Source of the DNA: Ostrea edulis
Lineage: Eukaryota
Reading direction: 5' to 3'
Assembly: GCF_947568905.1 (NCBI RefSeq)
Contig: NC_079164.1
Coordinates: 10,850,001 to 10,914,000 of the forward strand
Length of the DNA stretch: 64,000 nt
Shown here piece by piece: positions 35,198-52,234 of the stretch; the first letter of the stretch is position 1, and each line of letters begins with the position of its first letter. Below the pieces are notes generated by a model, which saw only the letters and a program-made list of their open reading frames with translations, was not told where the DNA came from and ran no database searches. The position numbers and the translations under genes were made by a program.

Positions 35198-38100
35198 CTA
35201 ATCAGTCTTAAACCGTTTAGGAGAGGGTTCACTTTCACTTCCCCCTTCTACATTACTACATTCATCCTCTGGGGGATTTAAGTGATGAGTGACTTGAAAG
35301 TTTCCAGCACTGTCTATGATGCACACTACATTTCCTGAATGATCGGAGTTCTCAGCTAATTTCATGGAATCTTCGTTTTCTTGAGCACTAGTATCCGACG
35401 AGTCAGGTTCTTCTTCCCCTGGTTCGGTGGAATTGTCAAAATTTTGGGTAACAGTGAACAACTGGGCGTTCGGCACCATGGTTGTCTTTTTATGCTCGGT
35501 GTGATTGTCAGAGACTGAAGCAGCATCAGGGGATGTGAGTGTTTCTACTTTGTATTCCCGTTTTATACACAATAGTTGTTGATACAGTAGATCCCGGTGT
35601 TGGCTTTCGAGCTGTTTCACTAGGTTTTCTGTATTCTTATCTAGTGGCACACTAATCTGTTCTATCAATTCTTGTTCTCTTTGTTTACATTTCTGTAGCT
35701 TCTCTTTTAAATCTTTAATCTACATTGACAAATAAGTTATCAGATCAAATTAGACTGAAAGATTTCAATGTACAGTAAAACTCTGATGTAGCGAATTTCT
35801 GCGGACATTCTATAAAAATTTGCTATAAGCGTAATTCGATATAAGCGTAATTCGCTATACATTTATAGCAAATTCAAAATTCAAATATAACAAATTCGTT
35901 ATGAAATTGATTTGTCGTACATGTATATCAGTTGTATAAGAAAGCAACAATCGATATACTAGCATTTGCATTGTCTATAAGAGAAAATAAGCCGATATAT
36001 TTTCGAGAAGAAATATTTCTATACAAGAAATATACACACTGATTTACATATGATAATCTATCTTGATGGAATATTAAGTATCAAAAGAAAAATGTGAACA
36101 AAATTATGTGCAATACATACTAACAGTCCATCACAGTGTCATTTACTTGTTGCTTTACACAAATAAAGTAGTGTTTGATAAAACTTCAAATTTTATTAAC
36201 AAGAATAGTAAACAATATCAACAATATATTTGCTAAACGTATGTGTAATTATTTTTTTGTGTTAACAACCTCTTTTGAAAAAATTCAAACAGAAATTTCG
36301 TGATAGTTATGGGATCTTTGTAAGGAAAGCGATTGTTAAAATCACAACGAATTTAAAACAAAAAAAATTATTATAAAAGGTGATTTTTACATTCATTTTT
36401 AATTCACGGGGAATAAGAATTTACTATGTTATATCCGTAAATTCGCTATATCCGTGTTCGTTATAAATGCAGATTTTTATATAGAATATATAAAGAATTT
36501 GCCAGGGCAATCGATTTCATTTTGCTATAGCCGTAACATTGCTATATCCGTGATCGCTATATTAGAGTTTTACTGTATCACTCCACAGCTAAGACAAGTT
36601 ACGAAAATGAACACAAGAAGAGGATGACATATAATGTATTAATGTAATACAATGCTTGCTTCAGTCACTTTAGATTCAAATATTTAAAAATGAATTTTAA
36701 AATAATACTTTAGAAATTTCACCTCTTTTTGTACGTTCTCTGCGTCTTAAAAAATTTGACCCCTCACCTCTGTCTGTAGGTTCTCTATGACTATCTTCAG
36801 TTGGGTTTCCGTTTGAACTTTGCCCTCGTGTAACTTTTCATATTTCTGTTGCAATTCTTCCATCTGGTTGTCGGAATTCTGATGGACAGCATGTTCCTTT
36901 TCTTCCTCAATGCCTACATCCTAATCGATCAACAAAATTTATATCAATTCCTAAACAAGCAACAAAATTTACATCAATTCCTAAACAAGCAACAAACATT
37001 ACGCCTATTACATAAATTCATGCATGTGTTTCAGAAATACTTGTAGTTTACAAAGAATGGTATTACTTTTTAAGCATCACAGGATTTGAACACATGACTG
37101 CCCCACTTCATAGTCTAGTAAAGTTTTTATTCAAAATGGTTATCAATTTCTTAATTAAATCATATATATAAATACAACATAGAGCCTCTTTCTGAATTAT
37201 TCCTTTAATCATGCTGGAAAATCTTATCCTTGACCACCATGTATCCCTTGATAACTCTGACACCTACATTTGATATTTATAACCATGTGATAAGATGACT
37301 GTACACAGTAGCAGACCTGACTAGAGATAATCTGGGTGGTGTATGAGCTGCCATCCTCTGATTCACCCTGGTCCTCCTGTATAATCATAATGTGAGTTTG
37401 TGAGTTGTCTGTAGAATCCACCGTTTCATTGGCTGCCACAGACACATGCATTGTTCCGTCAGAAGGCTTTCCATTGGTCAGACTGATTTGTGTTGTTTGA
37501 GGGTTCAGAAGGGCTGAACAAGAGTAATGAGACATTATAAATACAAAAGAATTACAATTTATGACACAACTTTAATATTTTTGATAACTTAACAATATCA
37601 CTGTTGACAATGTCCAAATGATTGAATCTGGTACAGAACTGAAGAATTTCCATCACTACTTCATAAATCCACGTATGGGTGCATCTAAAATGCTCCTCCA
37701 GCCATGCAGTTAAAGGTTCCACATGCATGCTTTTATGCATACATATTCTTCAACTAAATGTATTCTATGATTTTATCTATTTTCAGATTTTACTCATTAT
37801 TACATTTTGTATCTAATGCTTTCTTTTTGTACTTCATTCTAAGGCATGTACCTGTATAATTATGACAGTAACACAGTAAGGCTATCAACAGAGGCTCTAA
37901 CTTATACATGTTCATTGTTGTAGAACTTATCTGTAATTAATTAAATGTTGAGCAATGCTTTAACTTGTACATAATGTAGGAGTTAGTACATCTATAATTA
38001 ACTGAATGTTGAACAATGCTCCAACTTGAACGTACTGTAGGAGTTAGTATATCTATAATTAATTAAATGTTGAGCAATGCTTTAACTTGAATGTACTGTA

Positions 38101-40913
38101 GGAGTTAGTATATCTATAATTAATTAAATGTTGAGCAATGCTTTAACTTGAATGTACTGTAGGAGTTAGTATATCTATAATTAATTAAATGTTGAGCAAT
38201 GCTTTAACTTGAATGTACTGTAGGAGTTAGTATATCTATAATTAATTGAATGTTGAGCAATGCTTTAACTTGAATGTACTGTAGGAGTTAGTATATCTAT
38301 AATTAATTGAATGTTGAGCAATGCTTTAACTTGAATGTACTGTAGGAGTTAGTATATCTATAATTAATTGAATGTTGAGCAATGCTTTAACTTGAACGTA
38401 ATGTATGAGTTAATATACCTATAATTAACTGAATGTTAACCAAGTCTCTTACATGTTGTAGGAGTTAGTTTGATAGGCAACCAAATACAGTATGTAATGA
38501 GGATTCTCACTGGATGCTGATGACATTTCCGCCTTTGTGGCAATTGGTTAATTTTTCATGCAAATTTGACCTCTGACGAGACCCTCAACTAACATGTTGT
38601 TAGATGTTTGTGTAGTGGGTATGTGAGCAGATCCAACATCAAATTATAATTAGATTGAGGAGTATATCTATAATTAATATGTTGAATGGTGATACAGTAC
38701 ATTAATGAGGCTCTTACTAATTTGTATATAGTATAGGAGTATATCTATAATTAATTAAATGGTGACACGGTAGGAATGTTAATGAGCCTCTTACTTGTAC
38801 GTGTTGTAGGAGAGTATCTAAAATTAATCAAATGCTTTCACTTCGACTTGTGTAAATATTATCCTACTTACACTTGTAGCCTGTTTCAGCCAAACTAGTG
38901 GACATAACCGCCTGGGTAAGCACGGGATGGATGGACAATTCTGTTGGTTCCATGGAGTCATCTTGGTAAGAACATGGATTGTTAATCTCCTAAGTTAAAA
39001 ATACACATATAAAACACAAGTGTATAGAGGTTTCTTTACTGGTAATGATGATATACATGTATGATAACATTACTTATTTACAACATTCATTATGACAATG
39101 AAATAATGTTTTATTAATATCAGTCATTGAAAATCACAAAAGACCCATTCAAACTCAAAAAGTTTGAAAGGCTTATAAACAGCCTTACAGGTTAAAATGA
39201 GATCATAAACAGCCTTACAGGTTAAAATGAGACAGGTTAAAATGAGATCATAAACAGCCTTACAGGTTAAAATGAGATCATAAACAGCCTTACAGGTTAA
39301 AATGAGATCAGCTCCAGCATCATCTTTTTTCTCTTAAATTTTTCTTTTACCATATTTTATATATCTTATCCCATAAATATTGAAAACAATTTAATTTATT
39401 TATTTTTGTATAAAGTAAAATCCTCCCTGCGAGATTTCAGCACCATGTTTCATTCTAATGCAACAATTTTGTTATCTGCATTTTGATTGGCTACTGCACT
39501 GAGGTTTGAGCCAGTTAAACGAACATTTATGAGATGGAAAGATTTCCATTGTGACATGTGATAACAAATGAGGAGAGTTATTCAATAATCAATGTACCTT
39601 ATTTTATATACTGGGACAATTTAGTGTTTTGTCAATGAAGAAATTGACATAAATTTGAAACCTGCCTGAGCAATTTGGATTTGAAATGTTGTTTGTGGAT
39701 TTCTGAAGTGGGTCTTGTAATGTTTAATGGCTTCGTCTCTTCTATTGAAGCCATTTCGACATTTGTAGCAATGCCAGTGAGCACCCTTGAATTTCTTTTC
39801 TCCTTTGATGATACCAATAATATCGCAATGATCACAGCATCTTAATATTTTCAGCCCTGCATATCAAAACATAAAACATTATAAACATATCTCAAAACTT
39901 CGTAACATGACCTTAAATTTTGTTTCATCCGTAAATGTAGGAAATTCCAATATTAATTCGGTAATATTAAACAGTTCCTTTTACTTTATTCCATTAAAAA
40001 AATGTTTACACACCTGCAAAATCTATTCCTTTATCAACATGTTTAACACGAAAATGGGCTTTTAATATGACTGGGTCATGATAGAAATCTCTCTTTACAC
40101 ATAAAGGGCAGTGCATGTGAACCGAGTTATCAGGACATCTGTGGTCCATGCATCTCACAGGGTTATAGTTGTTTTCTGTGCCTTTGACTCTTACACTTGG
40201 GTGAGTCTAAAAGTAAAAGATGAAAACAAGAAACTATATTACAGATCACAACATAATAAAAGCTATTATATTTGGTGCATACAATATTTCGCAGAAATTT
40301 AGATTTTGCTAGTTTAGCTAGTAATGCTTTCGCCAGCATACTTTTCATGCCAAACTGCTAAGCTTCATGCAGTATGCTGGCGTAAAATGTCACACTTCAT
40401 TCCCTCATGTATTTTTAAAAAAAATTCAATTTATTTCTTAAATGTATTGTAAAATTGTGATATATTGTACATGTATCAAACAGCATTATGTCATTGTGTG
40501 CTAAAAATAAAGTTATAAAGAAATGCAAACTAAAGGTTTCGGGTTTTTTAAATATGGAAACATAAATTGTATCATAAAGTATGTAGCTAAATCAAGCGAT
40601 TGTGCCTGACACATCAATCACGGTATAATACGTACATATGATCATGGTATCCTATCCAGAGGAATTTCCGAAATATAAATAGGCGTATCCTTATGACGTT
40701 ATAAGGGACCTTTTCTGTTACTAAACATGTCGAAATGCAGGGTGTTTTCTCAAATCTATGCAAGATACATGTATTATTATTTTAGATTTGAAGAGCGTTT
40801 TATGAACATGAATACGGGACTAAACTAGCGATTGTTTTCATTTTCAAGTCATGAACAAAGTGACTCCATGTTTGTAAACTTCCTATATTGAGACTTACGA
40901 CAAAGGTGTTCAT
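35198..40913 (-). CDS. Uncharacterised C2H2-like zinc-finger and coiled-coil protein (7 exons, ~462 aa)
   Basis: Exons 40913-40899, 40206-40014, 39856-39666, 38989-38872, 37513-37317, 36920-36768, 35719-35198, phase-consistent if the 39665 donor is GC. Motifs HMHCPLCVKRDFYHDPVILKAHFRVKH and HWHCYKCRNGFNRRDEAIKHYKTH, a heptad-rich region LQQKYEKL...IKDLKEKLQKCKQREQEL, and C-terminal PSPKRFKTD. The first exon is the least certain. Confidence 0.8.
35773..36575. mobile_element. Tc1/mariner (pogo/Tigger-like) non-autonomous element
   Basis: TA-CAGTAAAACTCT ... AGAGTTTTACTG-TA, with subterminal GCTATA/GTTATA repeats. Confidence 0.8.
37930..38460. repeat. 61-bp minisatellite (~9 copies; degenerate copies to ~38830)
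   Basis: Unit TAGGAGTTAGTATATCTATAATTAATTAAATGTTGAGCAATGCTTTAACTTGAATGTACTG. Confidence 0.9.
39170..39310. repeat. 30-bp minisatellite (~4 copies)
   Basis: Unit ATAAACAGCCTTACAGGTTAAAATGAGATC. Confidence 0.85.
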
Positions 40914-41249
40914 TGCGAATCACGTTCCCTCTCACGATGAATTAAAAACAAGATATTCACATATCCATGTTTGTGAAAGGGTGCATTTGATATTCCCTCG
41001 GCCTTTCTGTGTGTGCAACGTCAGAAGTTCTGCTTATGCAGAAAAATTTGTGACGTCAAAATTTTGGTGATAAAATTAAACAAGTCGTACAATTATCAAT
41101 TTGCTTATCAACCAATTTCGTATTTTTATATTTGAAAATCTTTAATGTTGTCCTTCAAGAACACAAAAATACTGATAAAATACTTGTATACATAAAATGC
41201 ATACTATTTCAAAAACATACGACACATATACCGTACATCTTATTAAAAG

Positions 41250-41318
41250 TTGTTAAGACCGATCCCGACGGAAAAAGAAAAGAAGCAAACCGACTTGACC
41301 TTGTTGCAACATCTACAG
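41250..41318 (+). other. Putative non-coding first exon shared by ADAT2 and NDH-2
   Basis: A CpG-containing ATG-free segment ending in CAG|GTATTG (donor 41319). The next strong acceptor is TTTTTGATTTTCAAG (42038), 7 nt before the ADAT2 ATG. The 5' boundary is approximate. Confidence 0.55.
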
Positions 41319-42045
41319 GTATTGAGCGTTATTAAGGTGCTATGTAATTGCAATAAGTCTTTACATCATGCACTGCATTGACTTTATTTTCATCATATAA
41401 AGATACAGAACCTATAATGAAGGTTCAATCTCGGCCTAGTAACATGAGAAAACATCTGTCTGATATGTATAATTTTGAGCAGACATGTCATTCGAAATTT
41501 TAAGAAAGATCGCATGAAAAGGTACTGGAATCGTTCTTTTATTTTATTGCATGTCTCTTATTTTTAAAGGCCAAAAACATAGATGCTTGGGTCATATATG
41601 ATGCATGTAATGTTTCTTATTTCACTTGGAATTATTTTTAGGTAGGGTAGGTAGAATCTAGATATAAATTTTGAATATGAATACACATAGATAGTATGTA
41701 AATGATAACTATTTATAAGTTTTATGTTTATTCATTTATTAAGATCCAAGCACCTGTGGCAAAAAATATAAATTTTGATGTTTCTTCTTACATCTAAGTT
41801 CAAGTATTAGGGTAGATTGGTAGGAAATGTTCACCTTTTTCTCTCTCAAACTACACACATATTCTAATCACAATCTTCATTTAAGTTGCAGATATTATTA
41901 ACATACCAAATGGTCAACATTAACGATCATTTGACTAGTATTCTATTGTTTTCGTTTAATGATTATTTTCAAAATCACACCAGCAGCCAATCATATATTT
42001 TAAAAAAGAAGCACATGTTTGTATTTTTGATTTTCAAGGTAGATA

Positions 42046-42570
42046 ATGGATGATGCTCAGCAAAACTGGATGGTAAAATCCTTTAACTTTGCTGAAGAGG
42101 CTTTAGAAGCTGGTGAGGTTCCGGTGGGGTGTATAATGGTGTATAATGATGAAATCATAGCCGTAGGAAGAAATGAAGTGAATGAAACAAAAAATGCTAC
42201 TCGTCATGCTGAAATAGTAGCCATTGACCAAGTGTTGAAGTGGAGCAAAGCTCATGAGATACACTCTGCAGATGTATTTCATAAGACTGTTTTGTATGTT
42301 ACTGTAGAACCATGCATTATGTGTGCAGGTGCCCTGAGACAAGTGGGGATTCCCCTGGTTATATTTGGATGTTATAATGACAGGTTCGGTGGCTGTGGAT
42401 CTATTCTGTCTGTGCACGATGCCAACATCACCAGTCTAGGTCCTTCTTTTCAGTCCGTGGGTGGCATAATGAAAGACAGAGCTGTTGAGTTGCTAAAGAA
42501 GTTTTATCAAGGAGAGAATCCCAATGCTCCTGAGGAAAAAAGAAAGTCAAAGAAAGAGGAATCCAACTAA
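42046..42570 (+). CDS. ADAT2: tRNA-specific adenosine-34 deaminase catalytic subunit (174 aa, intronless CDS)
   Basis: GEVPVGC, NATRHAEIVAID (HAE) and LYVTVEPCIMCAGAL (PCxxC) zinc deaminase motifs, plus NDRFGGCGSIL and GENPNAP, typical of eukaryotic ADAT2/Tad2. Confidence 0.96.
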   Translation: MDDAQQNWMVKSFNFAEEALEAGEVPVGCIMVYNDEIIAVGRNEVNETKNATRHAEIVAIDQVLKWSKAHEIHSADVFHKTVLYVTVEPCIMCAGALRQVGIPLVIFGCYNDRFGGCGSILSVHDANITSLGPSFQSVGGIMKDRAVELLKKFYQGENPNAPEEKRKSKKEESN

Positions 42571-42800
42571 AGCATCTCACAGATATTTTATTCTTTTTAC
42601 AGATGACTGTGGTACAGTAGTGCTATGTGAGCTATGTGATTCCAAAGTAATATATCATGAACATGTATATATGAACATTGAAGACATTAAGATGATTAAT
42701 GGACTTGTATCCTCCAATTTGCTGTACTACATAACAGTTTCATGTTAAGGAAGAACTGTCTCAAGAGGATCATACAAAGAAATTGACTCCAATCCAAGAC

Positions 42801-45800
42801 ATGATTAAGTTTACAAGAAAGTGTTTCCACATAAAGACGAGTTTATTTCATAGAAATTTAACCACCCAGACAGGTCGTAAGAAACTGGTGATTCTGGGAA
42901 CAGGTTGGGGAGGTTACAGTTTGCTCAGGAATATTGACAAGAAGGTGTTTGATGTGGTGGTGATAAGCCCTAGGAACTACTTTCTGTTTACACCTTTACT
43001 TGCCAGTACAACAGTGGGAACACTAGAATTCAGGTAATCTTGTGACTAACAGATATATAAAGCCAAAAGTAATAGTTAGTGTGTTTCCGCTAACAATTAA
43101 ACAGACAAAATTAGGGTAGGTAGGAAGAAAATAGATTTATTTCTCAAACTTTCTGATCACAATGTCCTCGTTGTTAGATTAACATATTGATTATGGCCAT
43201 GTTTTTCATTATCTTTTTATTTGATTATCTTCTGAGTAAGTACAACTGTCAACTCCAAAGCAATTTAATCAATAATGTCTTGAAGAATTTGTTTAAACAA
43301 TTTGTAAGGTGTATGATTTAGGGTCCATTGAGTTGTACAGGAAACACAATTTTTATTAAAGGCCTAATGGACATGATGGACAATTTCATATGATAGGAGT
43401 TCCAAAGAGTGGAAAATAATATTTGTATTTTTCTTTGGTTATAATGAATATCAATGTAACATTATTACTGGGGTAGGTAAATGTTTCAATTGTTTGCCTC
43501 TATTGCAGGGTTCGAAATTAACTTTTTCAAGCACTAGTCCGTACGGACTATTAACTGTTGATGTTCACTAGTCAGCAAAGCATTTCACTAGTCCATCCAG
43601 TATATAATAAAATGATCTTCATTTTATTCAATAGTATTTAATCAAATCAAATACATCACAGTTGCAAACAATTCAATTTCTGACACCTATAGAAGAAAAA
43701 GAGACCACCATATTTTATTTCGCATTCAAGATCTTCAGAAGCATACAATATTAACCTCCGAGTTAATCCTTTTATAAATGTCCATAAGTGCGTTCGAGAT
43801 CGACGTTCTTGTTGTTTTGGTGCTCAGATCTTAAAGTCACAAGAGTTGGAAATTTTATCAATAAAGTAAAAAAAATTCACTCGGTTGCCCAAATCATGAG
43901 CTATAGTGTTATGAACTACTGTGTTAGAGTCACGAATGTCGAGAAAATGTGCGCACAAACGTGCATGTTCTCAGACCACACTACTTGCAATTCTTGCACC
44001 TAGAACACATTCTCGTGATGTGTACTCGGCGTTCGGAATCGGCAGGAATTTGACAATTTGTGCACGTTCGTAGAACGGCGGTCTCGAACACACTCCATGT
44101 GCTAGGAAGATCAGGCTGTCATAGTCATGCAAACACTTGACCATGCAGGTAATCAACCATAAGTTCAAACATCTAAGATACTCCGACAAATGTTGCTAAA
44201 AATCTTTACCAATTCAAGATTGAATTCTGGATTTTCACTAGTCCGTACGGACTAGTACTATAGAGAGTTCACTAGTCCGACACGTTTTTTACTAGTCTCG
44301 GACTTACGGACATGAGTTAATTTCGAACCCTGTATTGCAAAGTAGACAGTCTAGCTGACACACAAGGATCAATTTGCTACTCATTGTGTCTGTCTTTCTA
44401 TCTGTTTTGTGGTCTGTATATCTTTGGAAAGGTGCATCAGATAGATAAATAATTCATACTGAAACCAGCTGTACTTTAATATGGTAACTCCTGTAAGTAA
44501 AATATGAAAACACTTATAGATTTTTGATAATATTTAGGTCTATCATTGAACCAGTCAGAAATGTTCGCTTTCGTCAGACGGCAGACTTCCATTTGTCTTA
44601 TGCAACCAAAGTGGACAGAGACAATAAAGTTCTCCACTGCGAAAGTGTGCTGCAGCCAGGACTTGGATACACGCTGAATTACGACAAACTCGTGCTCGCA
44701 GTAGGGGCTCGCAGCAATACATTTAATGTTCCAGGTGTTGAGGAACATGCATTTTTTCTCAAGGTATGGAATTTGTGACCATTGTAAAATTCCATCACAT
44801 TATTTCTCATGTTTCTCAGATTCATGAGTGCCATGCAAGTGCTAATAATGCAACTGTTAATTGTCATACTTTTTCAACGTACATTGTATGAATGGTGTTC
44901 AGGGCCTTAGAAGTATTAAAGGGATCTTTAATGATTATGTGCGAACACTTACCATGACATGGGACCTCAGGTTTTAAGAACTCAATTCAAAAGACATTAT
45001 TTGATACACAGGAGCTTGATCTCATTTTAAAAAAAAGGGCCTCTATGTATAATATACAGGATTCTTGAATATATTTTGATATGTTGATACGGAGAGGACT
45101 TATATAGGCAGTGCCTGCTGTTCAATCCTATCATGAATTCTCATAATAAAATACTGTTTAAATTAGATATTTTGATATCATTTACTGATTGACAAAACGT
45201 GTTTATGGATGAGGCATTTGAATTGCACAAGTTGTTATGTTATCATATTGTAAACTGATACACATGTATTAACTACTGTTTCATCAATTAACAGGACATA
45301 CCTGATGCAAGGAAAATAAGGAATCGGATTATACAAAATATTGAACTTTCCCTTCACCCAGGCTTAGATGAAAATGAAAGGAAGCGGTTGCTGAACTTTG
45401 TAATTGTGGGAGGTGGTCCGACAGGGGTGGAGTTTGGTGCAGAACTGTATGACTGGATCGAGCAGGTAAATGGAACATACAGAAAAATACGGAACTAAAT
45501 TACTGAATCAAGCAGGTAAATGGAACATACAGAAAAATAGGGAACTAAATTACCAGTTCGAACAGATAAATACATTGTATGTAAATGGAAGGTCCAGAAA
45601 AATACAGAACTTTAAAAGTGTATTTCTGACCTTGGTAATTAAAAATGTGCATTGCATGTTAACAAATAGTAAAGAAAACAATATTTCATTTATTTATGAT
45701 TGTGATGCAACATTTGTGACAGGATGTTGCCAGAGTTTACCACCAGAGGAAGGACCAAGTACATGTGACCTTGGTAGAGTCCAATCAGATTTTGTCGTCT

Positions 45801-48800
45801 TTTGATGAGCGTCTGAGGCATTTTGCTGAGAAGAAAATTAAAGAAAGGGATCGATTTAAACTCGTCAAATCCTCTGTTACAAGTATGTTCTGTTTAATAA
45901 AACAATTCTTGAAACATTAACCATCGGGACTCTACAAGGAAAGGATTTTTGTAAGAGTCAGTGACAACAAACTGGGTGAAGCTTAATGACTTTCTTTTAA
46001 TATACAGGAGTGACATCATACTATGTGAAGCTCAATGGGGCCTCAGTTTTTGTGGTCTCATCCAAAGGACCATCCCATTTAGTTGACCTTCTATGACAAA
46101 CAAGGGTTACTGAGGACCTATTCTTACCTGGAGTAGCGACCTCATACTATGTGAAGTTTTATGATGTAGGGATGACATTAACTGTATGAAATTAATAAAC
46201 ATGTTCTTGATTTCAGTGTATTAAATCATCAAATGTATTGTTGGAAGTGCACAAGACTATTATTGTAGGGATGACGTCAGACTGTGTGAGACTTAATGAC
46301 CTTGTTTTATGTTGTAGGGGTGACGTCCGACTGTGTGAAGTTAAGTAATGGGGAAGATTTACCATGTGGATTAGTTGTATGGAGCACAGGCTTATCACCT
46401 ACACAGTTTGTCAAGTCACTAGATGTACAGAAAAACAAGAGTGGACAGGTATTTCCCAGTTTTGTGAATTAACAAAGCAGACCTTAGAACCAGTTTACAT
46501 GTGAAATATGATGAACCCAATGCAGACCAAAGTTACATAAATGCACACAAAGTCCTACAGAATCATTCAGATGAATTACTGAAACCACTATCAATGTAAA
46601 CGAAATAGATTATTTGATATTTGTGGAGTTAAGCAATCAAGCCTTTGGTTTGCGATTATTGGTACATGTATGTACATTAGGAATGCCCTTTTTTAATGCA
46701 GATTCTAACAGATAAATATCTACATGTTATTGGCGACACCACAGACAGTGTGTATGCTCTTGGTGACTGTGCAGACATCAAAGACAACTCACTTCCTTGT
46801 ATAGCACAGGTAGGAAAAATTCACTTCCTTGTATAGCACAGGTAGAAAATAATCTCACTCTCCTATATAGCACAGGTAGAAAAAAAAACCACTTCCATAT
46901 ATAGAACAGGTAGGAAAAATTAATGTCCATGTATAGTACAGGTAAAAAAAAAAAAACCTCCCTTCCCTGTAAAGCACTAGTAGAAAAAACCTTACTTCCC
47001 TGTATAGCGCAGGTAGAAAAAACCTCACTTCCTTGTATAGTACAAACTTTAAAAAAAATCTTACTTCCCAATATAGCAGGTAGAAAAAATTAACCTCCCT
47101 GTATAGTACAGGTAGAAAAATCCTCACTTCCCTGAATAGTGCTGGTAGAAAAAAAACTTCACTTCCTTGTATAGTACAGGTAAAAAGAAACCTCACTTCT
47201 CTATACAGCACAGGTAGATAAAATTAACTTCTATGTATAGTCAGATAGACAAAAGAACCTACTTCCTTGTACATGTATAACACAGGTAGAAAAAAACCTC
47301 ATTTCCCTGTATAGCACAGGTAGAAAAAAACTCAAATCCCTTTGTAACACAGGTAGGAAATTTTTACTTCCATGTATAGTACAGGTAGTAAAAACCTCAC
47401 TTCCTGTATAACACAGGTAGTAAAAAGCCTCACTTCGTTGCATAGCATAGGTAGGAAAGACCTCACTTCCCTGTATATCTCATTTCTCTGTATAGCAACT
47501 GCCGCAGTGGTCTAGAGGTAGATCGTTCATCCCACACTTGGAAGCTCCGGGTTAGAATCCCGGCCGCGACAGACCCAAGTTGTTAAAATAGGTATTGACA
47601 GTTCCATCGCCAAATGCTCGGCATTGGGTGTGGATATCACAGGTCCTCGGAGATGACCTTAAAAACGGATGTCCCGCGTCACAGTGGGTGTGGCACGCTA
47701 AAGAACCCTCACTGCTCGATGGCTGTAAGTGCTGAGCATAGACCTGAATTTTAAGTCCTTCAACGGTCTTGGTGCCGTCCCCATATGAGTGAAAAATTCA
47801 CAAGAGGGACGTTAAACAAGACACATTCAATCAATCAATCCCAGTATAGCACAGGTAGAAAGAAGCCTCAATTTCCTATATAGCACAGGTATAGGAAAAA
47901 GACCCACTTCTCTGTAAAGCAGAGATGGGAAATAGACAACTTACTTCTATATATGGCACATACAGTGAAACTCATTTCTAGTACATTGCAAAGACATTCC
48001 ACTACATTGTATATCTCAATACATTGTACAACATAGGTAGTCTACTTCCTTGTACATCTATATATTGTACACTGTGTTAAAAAAAAAATGAAGCACCTTG
48101 CTATAGTTAAACTGTTCAACTGATCCCAGGGTTGGCAAAAAAGTGGTCAATATGAGTATTGACTGGGCCAGTGGCCAATACTGGTTAAAACCGGTCAATA
48201 CTGGTTAATACTGGTCGATTGAAAATTATTTGGTCATTATAGTCTGTGTTATTTATTTTAAATGTTTAAGTGATCATTATGGTAAATACTGTAATTCATA
48301 ACATGCACTATCAGTTTATAATATACTTATAAGTCATAATATTAAATAAATAATGTACAAATGACTCGGTTGAATTGGGGAAGATGTAAAAGTTTCTGTT
48401 CAAATTCCTTAGTTTAACAAACTACCTATAAGTATTGTTTCATCAATCTTCATTTTAACTGTTGAATAAACATTTGAGGGGGTGGGTTGGTGATGTTTTC
48501 ATAACAATAACAGGCACACTGGTCATCACTGGTCCTAGCCTATGCTTATTAACACCTATCCACTCTCCTTCCTGTGCTCAGGTAATGTCTAGCTACCTTT
48601 TATTCTTAATCTGCCCAGGTACATGTATTTTAGAGGTCTGTCTCCAATCATCAAGCTATGTTATAGAACTGTGACCCTCTGGTAGGTACTGAAGATATTG
48701 CGGTCAGTTTCAGCAAACCAAATATATTAAACTTATGAAATTACATTTGATTATCTAATGAAAAATATTAGTCAACAATTGATCCATATAATGAAAAGAC

Positions 48801-51800
48801 TTAATTTATCTTTATCTTTGCAAGAAATGTACAAAAATAGGAAAATGGGCAGTTTAAATCACAATTGACCATTATTGACCAGTATTGACCACTTGGGGAG
48901 TATTGACTGGGACGGTTAAAACCACTGGTTAAAACAGGGCGGTTTTAACCGCCAAACCCTGAGTCTGATCCCATTAAAGAAATTTTTAACCCATGTGATT
49001 ATAATATTACAAAATGTTTGTATAACTATTTAGATAGAGGCTTTATGCAGAGAAAATAAGTTTATGGACTTTAAAGAACTGTATGAATATGTCTTACATG
49101 CTATAGTCATTGTGTCATATATTTTTATGCCCCCCTTTGAAAAAGAGGGGGCATATTGTTTTGCAACTGTCGGTCGATCGGTCGGTCTGTAGACCACATG
49201 TTGTCCGCTCAATATCTTGAGAACCTTTCACTTGATGATAATGATATTTCATATGTGGGTTGGTTATGAGTAGAAAATGACCCCTATTGTTTTTCATGTC
49301 AAAAGGTCAAGGGTCAATCTACTCTCGACAGGAATATAATGTCCACTCAATATCTTGAGAACCCTTTGCTTCAAAAACATCAAACTTAGCACACTGGTAC
49401 ATCCTAAGGAGTAGATGACTCCTATTGATTTTGAGGTCATATGGTCAAAGGTCAAGGGTCAAACTGGGCATAGGAATATACTGACCATTCAATTTCTAGA
49501 GAACCCTTTGCTTGACAGACATCAAACTTGGTACACCAGAACATCTTCAGGAGAAGATGACCCCTATTGATTTTGAGGTCACATGGTCAAAGGTCAAGGG
49601 TCAAACAGGACATTAGAATATACTGTCCACTCAATATCTTGAGAACCCTTTGCTTGACAGACATCAAACTTGGTATACTGGTACATCTTCAGGAGAAGAT
49701 GACCCCTATTGATTTTGAGGTCACATGGTCAAACGTCAAGGGACTTAATAATATAATATGGACTTAATAATATAATGTCCGTTCAATATCTTGAGAACCC
49801 TTTGCTTGACAGACATCAAACTTAGTACACTGGTATATCTTCAGGAGAAGATGACTCCTATTGATTTTGAGGTCACATGATCAAAGGTCAAGGGTCAAAC
49901 TAGACATGGAAATATACTGTCCGCTCAATATCTTGAGAACCCTTTGCTTGACAGACATCAGACTTGGTACACTGGTACGTCTTCAGGAGAAGATGACCCC
50001 TATTGATTTTGAGGTCAAAGGTCAAGGGTAAAACTGGACATAGGAATATACTGTCTGCTCAATATCTTGAGAACCCTTTGCTTGACAGACATCAAACTTG
50101 GTACACTGGTACGTCTTCAGGAGAAGATGACCCCTATTGATTTTGAGGTCACATGGTCAAAGGTCAAGGGTCAAACAGGACATAGGAATATACTGTCCGT
50201 TCAATATCTTGAGAACCCTTTGCTTGACAGACATCAAACTTGGTACACTGGTACATCTTCAAGAGAAGATGATCCCTATTGATTTTGATGTCACATGTTT
50301 TAAGGTCAAGGGTCAACCTGGACATTGGAATATACTGTCCACTCAATATCTTGAGAACCCTTTGCTTGACAGACATCAAACTTAGTACAGTGGTGTATAT
50401 TCAGGAGGAGATGATTCCTATTGATTTTGAGGTCACATGGTCAAAGGTCAAACTGAACATAGTAATATACTGTCCACTCAATATCTTGATAACCCTTTTG
50501 CTTGACGGACATCAAACTTAGTACACTGGTACATCTTCAGGAGAAGATGACCCATATTGATTTTGAGGTCAAAAGTCAATTGTTGAACTGGACATAGTCA
50601 TATATTGTCTCCTATATTTTAAGAATTATTTGCTTGATTGACACCAAACTTGGTACACTGGTACAGCATAAGGAGTAGATGACCCCTATTGATATTTAGG
50701 TCACATGGTCAATTCACTCTTGACATAGGAAGATATTGTCTGCTCAGTATTTTGAATTGATGATACATATGTACTACTATCAATTAAATGATGTGTGTGT
50801 ATAACCCTTTTCAATTTTGCACCATGGGGGGCATATGTGTTTTACAAACATCTCTTGTTTTCTCTTCTTTTCCTTTTGTTATCTGTCATTTGTTTTGTTA
50901 TTTTGACTGCATGCCAACATGATGATGTCAATAGATAAATAGAAATTGTTTAACTCCAGCAGCTTGTCTACTGTATGTCGCATTCTAGTGATGCAACTTA
51001 GTGATTCATCTTACATTCTAGTGATGCAACTTAGTGATTCATCTTACATTCTAATGATGCAACTTAGTGATACATCTTACATTCTAATGATGCAACTTAG
51101 TGATACATCTTACATTCTAGTGATGCAACTTAGTGATACATCTTACATTCTAAAATGATATGTTACCAGTGTATGATAATCTCCAGTCTACTGGAGCTCT
51201 GTACAGGCGAATCTGTTTAAAGAATCAGACCTGATGAGAAAGATTGATTTATAATTAATTATAATTACAGGTGGCTGAAAGACAGGGAGAATATGTAGCA
51301 AATCTTCTGTGCGGAAAAGCAGATAAGGAGTTCACTTTTCAAAGCAAGGGGATGTTAGCATACGTAGGGCATTACCAAGGTGTTTCCGATATTCCAAACA
51401 TGAAAATGCAGGGTAAGACTCCATGTTATGAGAATTGGTTCCCATAGCAACATAATCGCTTTAATGAGAAGATTGTTATTGATAAAAGTGAGTTAAAAAA
51501 TGGTAGTTATTTCTATGGGCTAGTAGGTCTTTGGCAGGGCTTAAAATTTTTACAAGCAGTCAGCCCTGCATTACAAGTTAATTTTAGAGCAAGTTTCAAA
51601 CACTGAATTGTAGGATAATGACCGTTCAGCCCAGTCATGAATTGGTGCTATCATTGTTGCTCTAAAACATATTTTATAAAGTTTACACCTGATAAATTAA
51701 AATTCGTGAGAAAGTTTGCTGTTTTCAATGCATGTTTCTTGGGTCACATTGGTCTCTTATTTCATGGTTAAGCATCATTTCATGTATGTAGTTCAATAAC

Positions 51801-52234
51801 ATATTAAACATTATTGGGTCATCTCAGTATACTCATGGGCTTATTATTTCATCTCAGTATACTCATAGGCTTATTATTTCATCTCAGTATACTCATGGGC
51901 TTATTATTTCATCTCAGTATACTCATGGGCTTATTATTTCATCTCAGTATACTCATGGGCTTATTATTTCATGCTTGGGCATTTTTTCATGTTCTTAGCT
52001 TGGATTATCTAACATGTTAGACTTTACTTTCTGCTTTAATAATGTTTAACCCATTACTTCCTGGTTTCTTTCATAAGGATAATTTTTTTTAATTATGTTT
52101 TAGGGATTACTTCCTGGTTCCTGTGGAGGTCGGCCTATCTGACAAAGCTGGGAAGCTGGCGACTGAGAATGCAGGTTCCCATGGATTGGACCAAAGCAAT
52201 CCTGTTCGGCAGGGATATCTCCAGATTTGATTGA
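42801..52234 (+). CDS. Type II (alternative, rotenone-insensitive) NADH:quinone oxidoreductase NDH-2, mitochondrial; 8 coding exons, ~433 aa
   Basis: Exons 42801-43033, 44538-44763, 45295-45465, 45723-45882, 46318-46448, 46702-46809, 51271-51412, 52104-52234, phase-consistent. Basic presequence; [11 protein letters not shown] and [12 protein letters not shown] (FAD); [17 protein letters not shown] (NADH); VVWSTG; YALGDCA...PCIAQVAERQG; membrane-anchor WRSAYL...[15 protein letters not shown]. No EF-hand insert. Confidence 0.93.
43506..44332. mobile_element. CAGGG-terminated MITE with 5-bp TSD (hAT5-like) in NDH-2 intron 1
   Basis: CAGGGTTCGAAATTAAC / GTTAATTTCGAACCCTG. TATTG flanks both sides (43501-43505, 44333-44337). 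Confidence 0.8.
46030..46135 (+). mobile_element. Fragment of a dispersed SINE-like repeat
   Basis: GGGGCCTCAGTTTTTGTGGTCTCATCCAAAGGACC...CTGAGGACCTATTCT. A related fragment lies at ~44955. The family assignment is from recall only. Confidence 0.4.
46789..47930 (+). repeat. ~30-35-bp degenerate minisatellite derived from the NDH-2 exon 6 / intron 6 junction (>20 copies)
   Basis: Consensus CTCACTTCCYTGTATAGCACAG|GTAGAAAAAAA. The first copy is the real exon end (46789-46809) and donor. Confidence 0.9.
47498..47840 (+). mobile_element. Full-length tRNA-derived SINE inserted in the minisatellite
   Basis: A-box-like GTGGTCTAGAGG, B-box-like GGTTAGAATCC, and a (CAAT)n tail. Flanked by degenerate CTCTGTATAGCA / CCCAGTATAGCA, a possible TSD. 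Confidence 0.85.
48127..48961. mobile_element. Non-autonomous DNA element with CAGGGTT...AACCCTG termini
   Basis: CAGGGTTGGC / GCCAAACCCTG, with subterminal GGTCAATACTGG / CCAGTATTGACC repeats. No TSD found. Confidence 0.6.
49122..50860 (+). mobile_element. Non-autonomous Helentron-associated element with ~141-146-bp internal tandem array (~10 copies)
   Basis: 5' TTTTTATGCCCCCC and 3' GGGGGGCATA subterminal IRs, GTCG microsatellite, 3' hairpin GTGTTTTACAAACAT then CTCTTGTT. The unit contains CTTGAGAACCCTTTGCTTGACAGACATCAAACTTGG. Confidence 0.85.
50985..51150. repeat. 33-bp minisatellite (5 copies)
   Basis: Unit TCTAGTGATGCAACTTAGTGATTCATCTTACAT. Confidence 0.9.
51820..51972. repeat. 30-bp minisatellite (5 copies)
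   Basis: Unit TCATCTCAGTATACTCATGGGCTTATTATT. Confidence 0.9.

Follow-up and report, generated by a model that had tools for sequence, protein, structure and literature searches.

How are two adjacent genes with unrelated products expressed when they lie on one strand and the start codon of the second follows the stop codon of the first by only 230 nt? The question arises in a 64,000-nt stretch of the Ostrea edulis genome (assembly GCF_947568905.1, contig NC_079164.1, positions 10,850,001 to 10,914,000 of the forward strand; hereafter the window, from whose first base all coordinates are counted). Here, an intronless frame for the tRNA adenosine deaminase subunit ADAT2 stands just upstream of the gene for an alternative NADH dehydrogenase, NDH-2. 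A preliminary description of the sequence had proposed that the two share a first exon or a bicistronic mRNA. Our analysis of RNA-type contigs and molluscan genomes supports the shared leader—the locus is probably a single transcription unit, which gives rise to two mRNA classes from one pre-mRNA through the choice of 3' splice site—and the bicistronic reading is plausible.

The record OX387704.1 (assembly GCA_947568905.1) is identical to the window base for base over the 12.5 kb compared, with window base 1 corresponding to record position 10,850,001. The RNA evidence comes from assembled contigs of two public runs belonging to two studies, X9 and X1, and such contigs are silent on transcript starts, ends and single-molecule linkage. 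Neither run is recorded as RNA; we treat both as such because their contigs cover the exons of the locus and not its introns and display GT..AG joints, including those at the NDH-2 introns 43034-44537 and 44764-45294. Two other runs, X10 and X11, were dropped as RNA evidence: both contain intron sequence and share identical contig ends (42803; 44840-45121), and they are taken for reduced-representation DNA. Across the locus, the X1 source, labelled organism A, departs from the window at ~1.4-2.8% of positions, and 7 nt are inserted in its gap between the two genes (window 42730); this source represents either a close relative or a divergent haplotype.

These contigs show that one donor, at the end of a non-coding leader exon, serves two acceptors. 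The leader (41250-41318, plus strand) had been described as free of ATG and as ending at a donor at 41319, and both features are borne out, with GT at 41319-41320. Its proposed extent stands at the 3' end, which is fixed by the RNA contigs; only its last 30 nt appear in them (41289-41318, in pieces of 25-30 nt), and the 5' end at 41250 is a guess. Removal of the proximal intron (41319-42038, 720 nt, GT..AG) joins 41318 to 42039 and gives the ADAT2-containing mRNA. This joint is found in X9 (depth 7.9) and X1 (depth 16.8), where 28 leader letters are followed by ADAT2, and it is kept in X1 despite the sequence divergence from the window. The acceptor AG lies at 42037-42038 and the exon starts 7 nt ahead of the ADAT2 ATG, just as had been anticipated.

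The second joint, 41318>42603, removes a distal intron of 1284 nt (41319-42602, plus strand, GT..AG) that holds the whole ADAT2 frame. It is carried by a 1608-nt contig of X9 (record 25, depth 36.1), in which the last 30 letters of the leader run into NDH-2 exons 1-3 and ADAT2 is skipped; the expectation that splicing to 42603 would yield an NDH-2 mRNA devoid of ADAT2 is hence supported. The alignments report the two joints as 41316>42037 and 41313>42598. In X1, the NDH-2 contig ends at 42598, short of the acceptor by the five letters TACAG common to the leader end and the acceptor flank, and the contig coming from the ADAT2 frame ends at 42627, 30 letters past 42598. This pair of ends fits the overlap expected in a graph of 31-letter words where two paths merge at the 42603 acceptor; the leader>42603 piece, for which X1 gives no report, would by our own reckoning measure only ~55 nt. 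Also in favour of one unit, X9 and X1 have no contig over 43036-43206, where NDH-2 intron 1 begins. A further acceptor that had been proposed in the gap, at 42738, fared differently from the one ending at 42602, as no run contains a joint to it.

That the joints are artefacts of contig assembly is very improbable. The five shared letters and the shortness of the leader pieces (25-30 nt) might invite such an explanation; however, five letters cannot bridge words of 31, both joints are exact GT..AG junctions from one donor, 41318>42039 recurs in two studies, and two more NDH-2 introns are correctly spliced out in these contigs.

The identity of both products is clear from conserved motifs and folds. 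The upstream frame (42046-42570, plus strand, 174 codons) is annotated in the record with the exact protein and has the HAE and PCxxC (PCIMC) deaminase motifs, a match to Pfam dCMP_cyt_deam_1 (5e-23) and a C-terminus rich in lysine and arginine. Its closest relatives of solved structure are mouse and human ADAT2 (E-values of 4.5e-64 and 2.9e-63; 7nz7 and 3dh1), the bacterial TadA structures scoring lower (1e-19 to 1e-22). A search of 5.8 billion proteins gave relatives throughout animals under the name tRNA-specific adenosine deaminase 2, and we accordingly assign the predicted product to ADAT2/Tad2. ADAT2, which provides the catalytic activity of the tRNA A34 deaminase as one of its subunits, is essential in eukaryotes. 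No second Ostrea-labelled copy is found among the best 120 matches listed, and the gene appears to be single in O. edulis. Its start codon has a good context, with A at -3 and G at +4.

The downstream gene begins with an exon at 42603-43033 (plus strand), supported by the splice joint, the reading frame and Pfam, which consists of a 5' untranslated region (UTR; 42603-42800) and a coding part (42801-43033) with the dinucleotide-binding motif GTGWGG, followed by GT. Coding exon 2 (44538-44763) is delimited by the joints 43033>44538 and 44763>45295 in both X9 and X1. The remaining coding exons were located by tblastn with the orthologous protein of a mussel-like cDNA contig, L015 (see below), at ~45295-45486, 45720-45932, 46311-46451, 46699-46818, 51268-51420 and 52103-52234, with borders that are approximate except for 45295, which comes from the joint. 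Exons 1 and 2 match Pyr_redox_2 (PF07992), and the 433-aa product of the record matches both this family and NDH2_C (PF22366). The L015 orthologue matches Plasmodium PfNDH2 at 2.5e-65 and yeast Ndi1 at 5e-59. The fold, the GxGxxG signature and the C-terminal domain together mark the predicted protein as a type II NADH:quinone oxidoreductase (NDH-2/Ndi1). To our knowledge, vertebrates and insects lack this alternative NADH dehydrogenase, which has been discussed in relation to hypoxia and sulphide tolerance.

As the preliminary description had observed, the 230 nt between the two frames contain neither AATAAA nor ATTAAA and no CpG-rich, promoter-like segment; there is not a single CpG, and the only hexamers resembling poly(A) signals are the weak variants AATATA (42649) and AAGAAA (42777). 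The distal exon starts at 42603, 32 nt past the ADAT2 stop. The acceptor element (42579-42606, plus strand) comprises a pyrimidine tract, a CAG ending at 42602 and ATGA; it is the sole strict acceptor-like site in the gap, such a site arising in 4% of composition-matched shuffles. It is also almost invariant between O. edulis, Saccostrea cucullata and Crassostrea gigas, in which the remainder of the gap is ~50-60% identical and contains no other conserved block.

The arrangement is widespread in molluscs. In each of the nine molluscan sources examined—seven named species (six bivalves and the gastropod Haliotis) and two mussel-like sources—an intronless ADAT2 frame is followed by NDH-2 on the same strand, in agreement with the synteny that had been suggested as a check. 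The gaps, obtained from exact-protein look-ups of ADAT2 orthologues, measure 216 nt in Saccostrea, ~223 nt in C. gigas, 373 nt in Pinctada, 689 nt in Pecten maximus, 597 nt in Mercenaria, 338 nt in Haliotis rufescens and 287 nt in L015, NDH-2 exon 1 having been confirmed by tblastn in each of these; in the mussel-like host of JGI and ENA metagenomes, represented by genomic contigs in which a nucleotide match to L015 identifies NDH-2 exon 1, the gap is 315 nt. These data concern synteny, the splicing evidence being from O. edulis. NDH-2 exon 1 ends after TLEF in all seven sources confirmed by tblastn, and inspection by eye finds an AG acceptor within ~60 nt upstream of the ADAT2 ATG in every source. 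A strict acceptor scan of the nine gaps detects exactly one sense-strand site in five of them (chance rate in shuffles 1-6% for these, 1-25% over all nine), as against one site on the antisense strand of all nine together; the other four gaps have weaker candidates, judged by eye.

The presence of the pair in six bivalves and Haliotis indicates a linkage at least as old as the bivalve/gastropod split. Outside molluscs, the annelid Owenia has no NDH-2 within 10 kb of its ADAT2, and the pair is absent in the hemichordate Ptychodera, where ADAT2 contains introns and has other neighbours. The idea that an ADAT2 retrocopy was inserted into an NDH-2 intron is weakened by Owenia, whose ADAT2 frame is likewise intronless with no NDH-2 nearby. 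The long conservation is most simply explained as lock-in, because two needed genes tied to a single promoter and a single leader are hard to separate.

Does transcription of the ADAT2 form proceed into NDH-2? In X1, a contig spanning 42451-42627 (record 3) shows ADAT2 RNA that is unspliced over the stop codon and over the 42603 acceptor and enters the NDH-2 exon. A mussel-like Logan contig, L015, goes further: its 2572 nt include an ADAT2 frame (138-650), a 287-nt spacer and a complete, intron-free NDH-2 frame (938-2272). This contig is cDNA: in all genomes examined, the sequence matching its NDH-2 part is divided among separate exons. Its ADAT2 is 80% identical to that of the mussel-like metagenome host, and its last positions (2554-2572) are Illumina adapter, not biological sequence. 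L015 is the assembly expected from a bicistronic mRNA, and an overlap of at least 31 nt between an ADAT2 3' UTR and an NDH-2 5' UTR would give the same assembly. Exact-protein look-ups of the ADAT2 proteins of O. edulis and C. gigas yielded no transcript structure, only genomic Logan contigs collinear with their introns, and metagenome contigs sought with the NDH-2 protein for further cDNA gave one genomic exon only.

That overlap is also available to the view that these are two ordinary tandem genes, NDH-2 having its own start in or near the gap and ADAT2 its own 3' end, with the leader>42603 joint a product of minor read-through or aberrant splicing. The annotation does contain two separate genes, and start sites are invisible in contigs. 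We nevertheless regard this as unlikely: the leader is the only 5' path of the well-covered X9 NDH-2 contig (depth 36), the gap is devoid of CpG and of any conserved block besides the acceptor, which itself is conserved, and the two genes have stayed together throughout the history of Mollusca, 216-689 nt apart.

Accepting a shared leader, we can trace the probable course of expression. A bidirectional promoter at ~41050-41250 probably drives the unit. Splicing of the leader, which ends at 41318, to 42039 keeps ADAT2 as the first reading frame and produces the ADAT2 mRNA; splicing to 42603, 32 nt past the ADAT2 stop, removes ADAT2 within the 1284-nt intron and produces the NDH-2 mRNA, from which NDH-2 would be translated. 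Since the stretch from the ADAT2 stop to the NDH-2 exon is free of canonical poly(A) signals, the ADAT2 form reads into that exon. Beyond this point two courses are conceivable. We somewhat favor one in which the ADAT2 form includes the spliced NDH-2 exons, ends at the poly(A) site of NDH-2 and is structurally bicistronic; termination at a non-canonical site is the less likely course.

The second course underlies the most serious rival, namely that promoter and leader are shared without any true bicistronic mRNA. ADAT2 would then be cleaved and polyadenylated non-canonically soon after 42627, in the gap or NDH-2 exon 1, and all molecules reaching the NDH-2 coding exons would be of the leader>42603 form. 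RNA ends being invisible in contigs, this is compatible with the variant hexamers at 42649 and 42777, with the canonical hexamers in the gaps of other molluscs (see below), and with the depth of the NDH-2 contigs, which exceeds that of ADAT2 2.4- to 4.5-fold, implying that most NDH-2 RNA is not the long, ADAT2-containing form. Set against it are the lack of a canonical poly(A) signal in the O. edulis gap, the absence of any contig break or branch between 42627 and 43031 in X1 or X9, and the unbroken course of L015 from ADAT2 to the end of NDH-2. On balance, we consider this rival possible, though doubtful. The proposal of a bicistronic mRNA draws partial support from the read-through in X1 and the two frames of L015; contigs neither prove a single molecule nor speak against an unseen poly(A) site.

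Several points weigh against one unit with a read-through ADAT2 form. The leader>42603 joint is directly seen in X9 only and the read-through in X1 only, the X9 ADAT2 contig stopping at 42533; all the RNA evidence consists of assembled contigs blind to starts, ends and molecule-level linkage, from runs whose RNA status is deduced from their joints and not recorded. AATAAA or ATTAAA occurs in six of the nine molluscan gaps (five scored, C. gigas by eye), and the ADAT2 mRNA might terminate early in these species. It may likewise be that NDH-2 starts internally, within the gap, or that polyadenylation uses a non-canonical site, for which AATATA at 42649 is a candidate. Finally, a bicistronic ADAT2 mRNA would have exon junctions far past its stop codon, which is unfavourable for an essential housekeeping message. 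As evidence, the hexamers of the other species were set aside: their frequency is roughly what AT-rich DNA would give by chance (~0.8 per 300 nt by our own estimate), and they decide nothing.

If a bicistronic form exists, NDH-2 would mostly serve as the 3' UTR of ADAT2. Reinitiation on it should be poor because a 174-codon frame and nine further AUGs precede the NDH-2 start, and translation of NDH-2 from this long form is unlikely. The same AUGs are part of the NDH-2 mRNA itself: the 198-nt 5' UTR (42603-42800) has nine upstream ATGs, versus ~4 expected from composition by our own estimate, and every frame they open is closed before 42801. On these grounds, NDH-2 translation is likely to be damped or regulated at reinitiation. 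The first upstream ATG coincides with the first base of the exon in three oysters (window 42603-42620; Saccostrea L008, 10562; C. gigas L016, 3169). The peptides it would encode are not conserved among them, with lengths of 5, 18 and 3 codons. We also considered whether the acceptor choice might act as a switch, regulated for instance by hypoxia or emersion, that apportions the output of one constitutive promoter between ADAT2 and a complex-I bypass, or whether NDH-2 might be translated from the bicistronic mRNA across the spacer with its many upstream ATGs; we hold out little expectation for such a putative role.

Upstream of the leader, the promoter/leader stretch (40950-41320) has 11 CpG, an observed/expected ratio of 1.12. 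Within it, a 59-nt block (41001-41058) is 88% identical between O. edulis, C. gigas and Saccostrea, and its flanks fail to align. In it are ACGTCA and a palindrome similar to a cAMP-response element, TGACGTCA; the leader itself has the motif AAGACCGATCCCGA, retained in C. gigas. Since the block has the leader on one side and, on the other, the first exon of a divergent gene on the minus strand, we infer that it is part of a bidirectional promoter.

The first exon of this divergent neighbour (40899-41050, minus strand, ATG at 40915-40913) is seen in RNA-type contigs and is spliced on to ~40200. Record 1 of X1 and record 23 of X9 end at 41031 and 41050, respectively, with a loose end before 40899; the annotated gene ends at 40913. 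Exons orthologous to it are also found upstream of ADAT2 in Saccostrea, Pecten and Haliotis. The exon at 39666-39872 shows 90-94% amino-acid identity to the genes in this position in Pecten and Haliotis, and this strong conservation suggests that the three-gene block is old. The record gives the neighbour as a whole (35500-41050, minus strand) a 462-aa product and no Pfam family.

How does the ADAT2/NDH-2 unit compare with known systems? One leader is spliced to both genes, the ADAT2 frame lies within 41319-42602, and the arrangement is kept in relatives; the unit is hence a new example of the already known shared-leader architecture. Its closest formal parallel is the cholinergic locus, where VAChT/unc-17 is nested in the first intron of ChAT/cha-1 in an arrangement conserved across phyla (PMC3053374; PMC3875643). 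Both loci have one leader with two acceptors, the upstream frame lying inside an intron that is removed from the downstream mRNA. However, the cholinergic products act in one pathway, whereas nothing obvious connects ADAT2 and NDH-2 in function. VAChT is also served by promoters and a 3' end of its own, all within the intron, whereas the ADAT2 3' UTR must run into the NDH-2 exon because the stop is only 32 nt before the distal acceptor.

In human, ADAT3/SCAMP4 is listed among promoter-sharing pairs with a shared 5'-most exon, as is CPNE1/RBM12, a pair of the same kind (PMC2568002, Table 1); the human case cited in the preliminary description is therefore correct. Like ADAT2/NDH-2, these pairs comprise two unrelated same-strand proteins with a common 5'-most exon and presumably a common promoter. 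ADAT3 is the partner subunit of ADAT2, yet the gene pair and the phylum differ, which points to an independent origin of the sharing. The conservation differs as well: ADAT2/NDH-2 extends over bivalves and gastropods, the human pair list having been checked mainly in mouse. The possible bicistronic form would further resemble RPP14/HsHTD2, where the first frame encodes a tRNA-processing factor and the second, in the 3' UTR, a mitochondrial enzyme, and where both proteins are documented from one bicistronic mRNA (PMC4705651). By contrast, the linkage of ADAT2 and NDH-2 comes from contigs only, and a separate NDH-2 mRNA without the first frame exists. We also considered a trans-spliced operon with a spliced leader and rejected it: the leader is a cis-encoded exon with a GT donor of its own, situated 720 nt upstream on the same strand. 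Among the papers searched, none links ADAT2 with NDH-2.

With a shared leader, the ADAT2 mRNA of molluscs would come from a unit that also produces an alternative NADH dehydrogenase, and microsynteny would have been kept for the depth of a phylum probably through a shared promoter and leader, not shared function, the independent human ADAT3/SCAMP4 arrangement being a parallel. The upstream leader should be considered when NDH-2 genes of oysters, scallops, clams and abalone are modelled, assigned promoters or counted for expression, and ADAT2 read-through will contaminate short-read quantification of NDH-2. The ratio of the two junctions offers a simple readout of any response of the splice choice to oxygen. 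Were the regulated switch or bicistronic translation true, the locus would constitute an operon-like unit in animals, maintained for ~500 million years, in which editing of the tRNA wobble base is coupled with alternative respiration.

The locus also contains three kinds of repeated sequence. Inside NDH-2 intron 1, the region 43378-44403 is represented in all four runs by many short, variant-rich contigs at a depth of ~100-330; it is a multi-copy repeat outside the transcription unit, probably of transposon-derived origin. From self-matches, a minisatellite of ~33-nt units (46780-47477) begins at the end of NDH-2 coding exon 6 (46699-46818), and a tandem array with a period of ~61 nt, whose copies are 85-95% alike, occupies 37928-38469 in an intron of the divergent neighbour.

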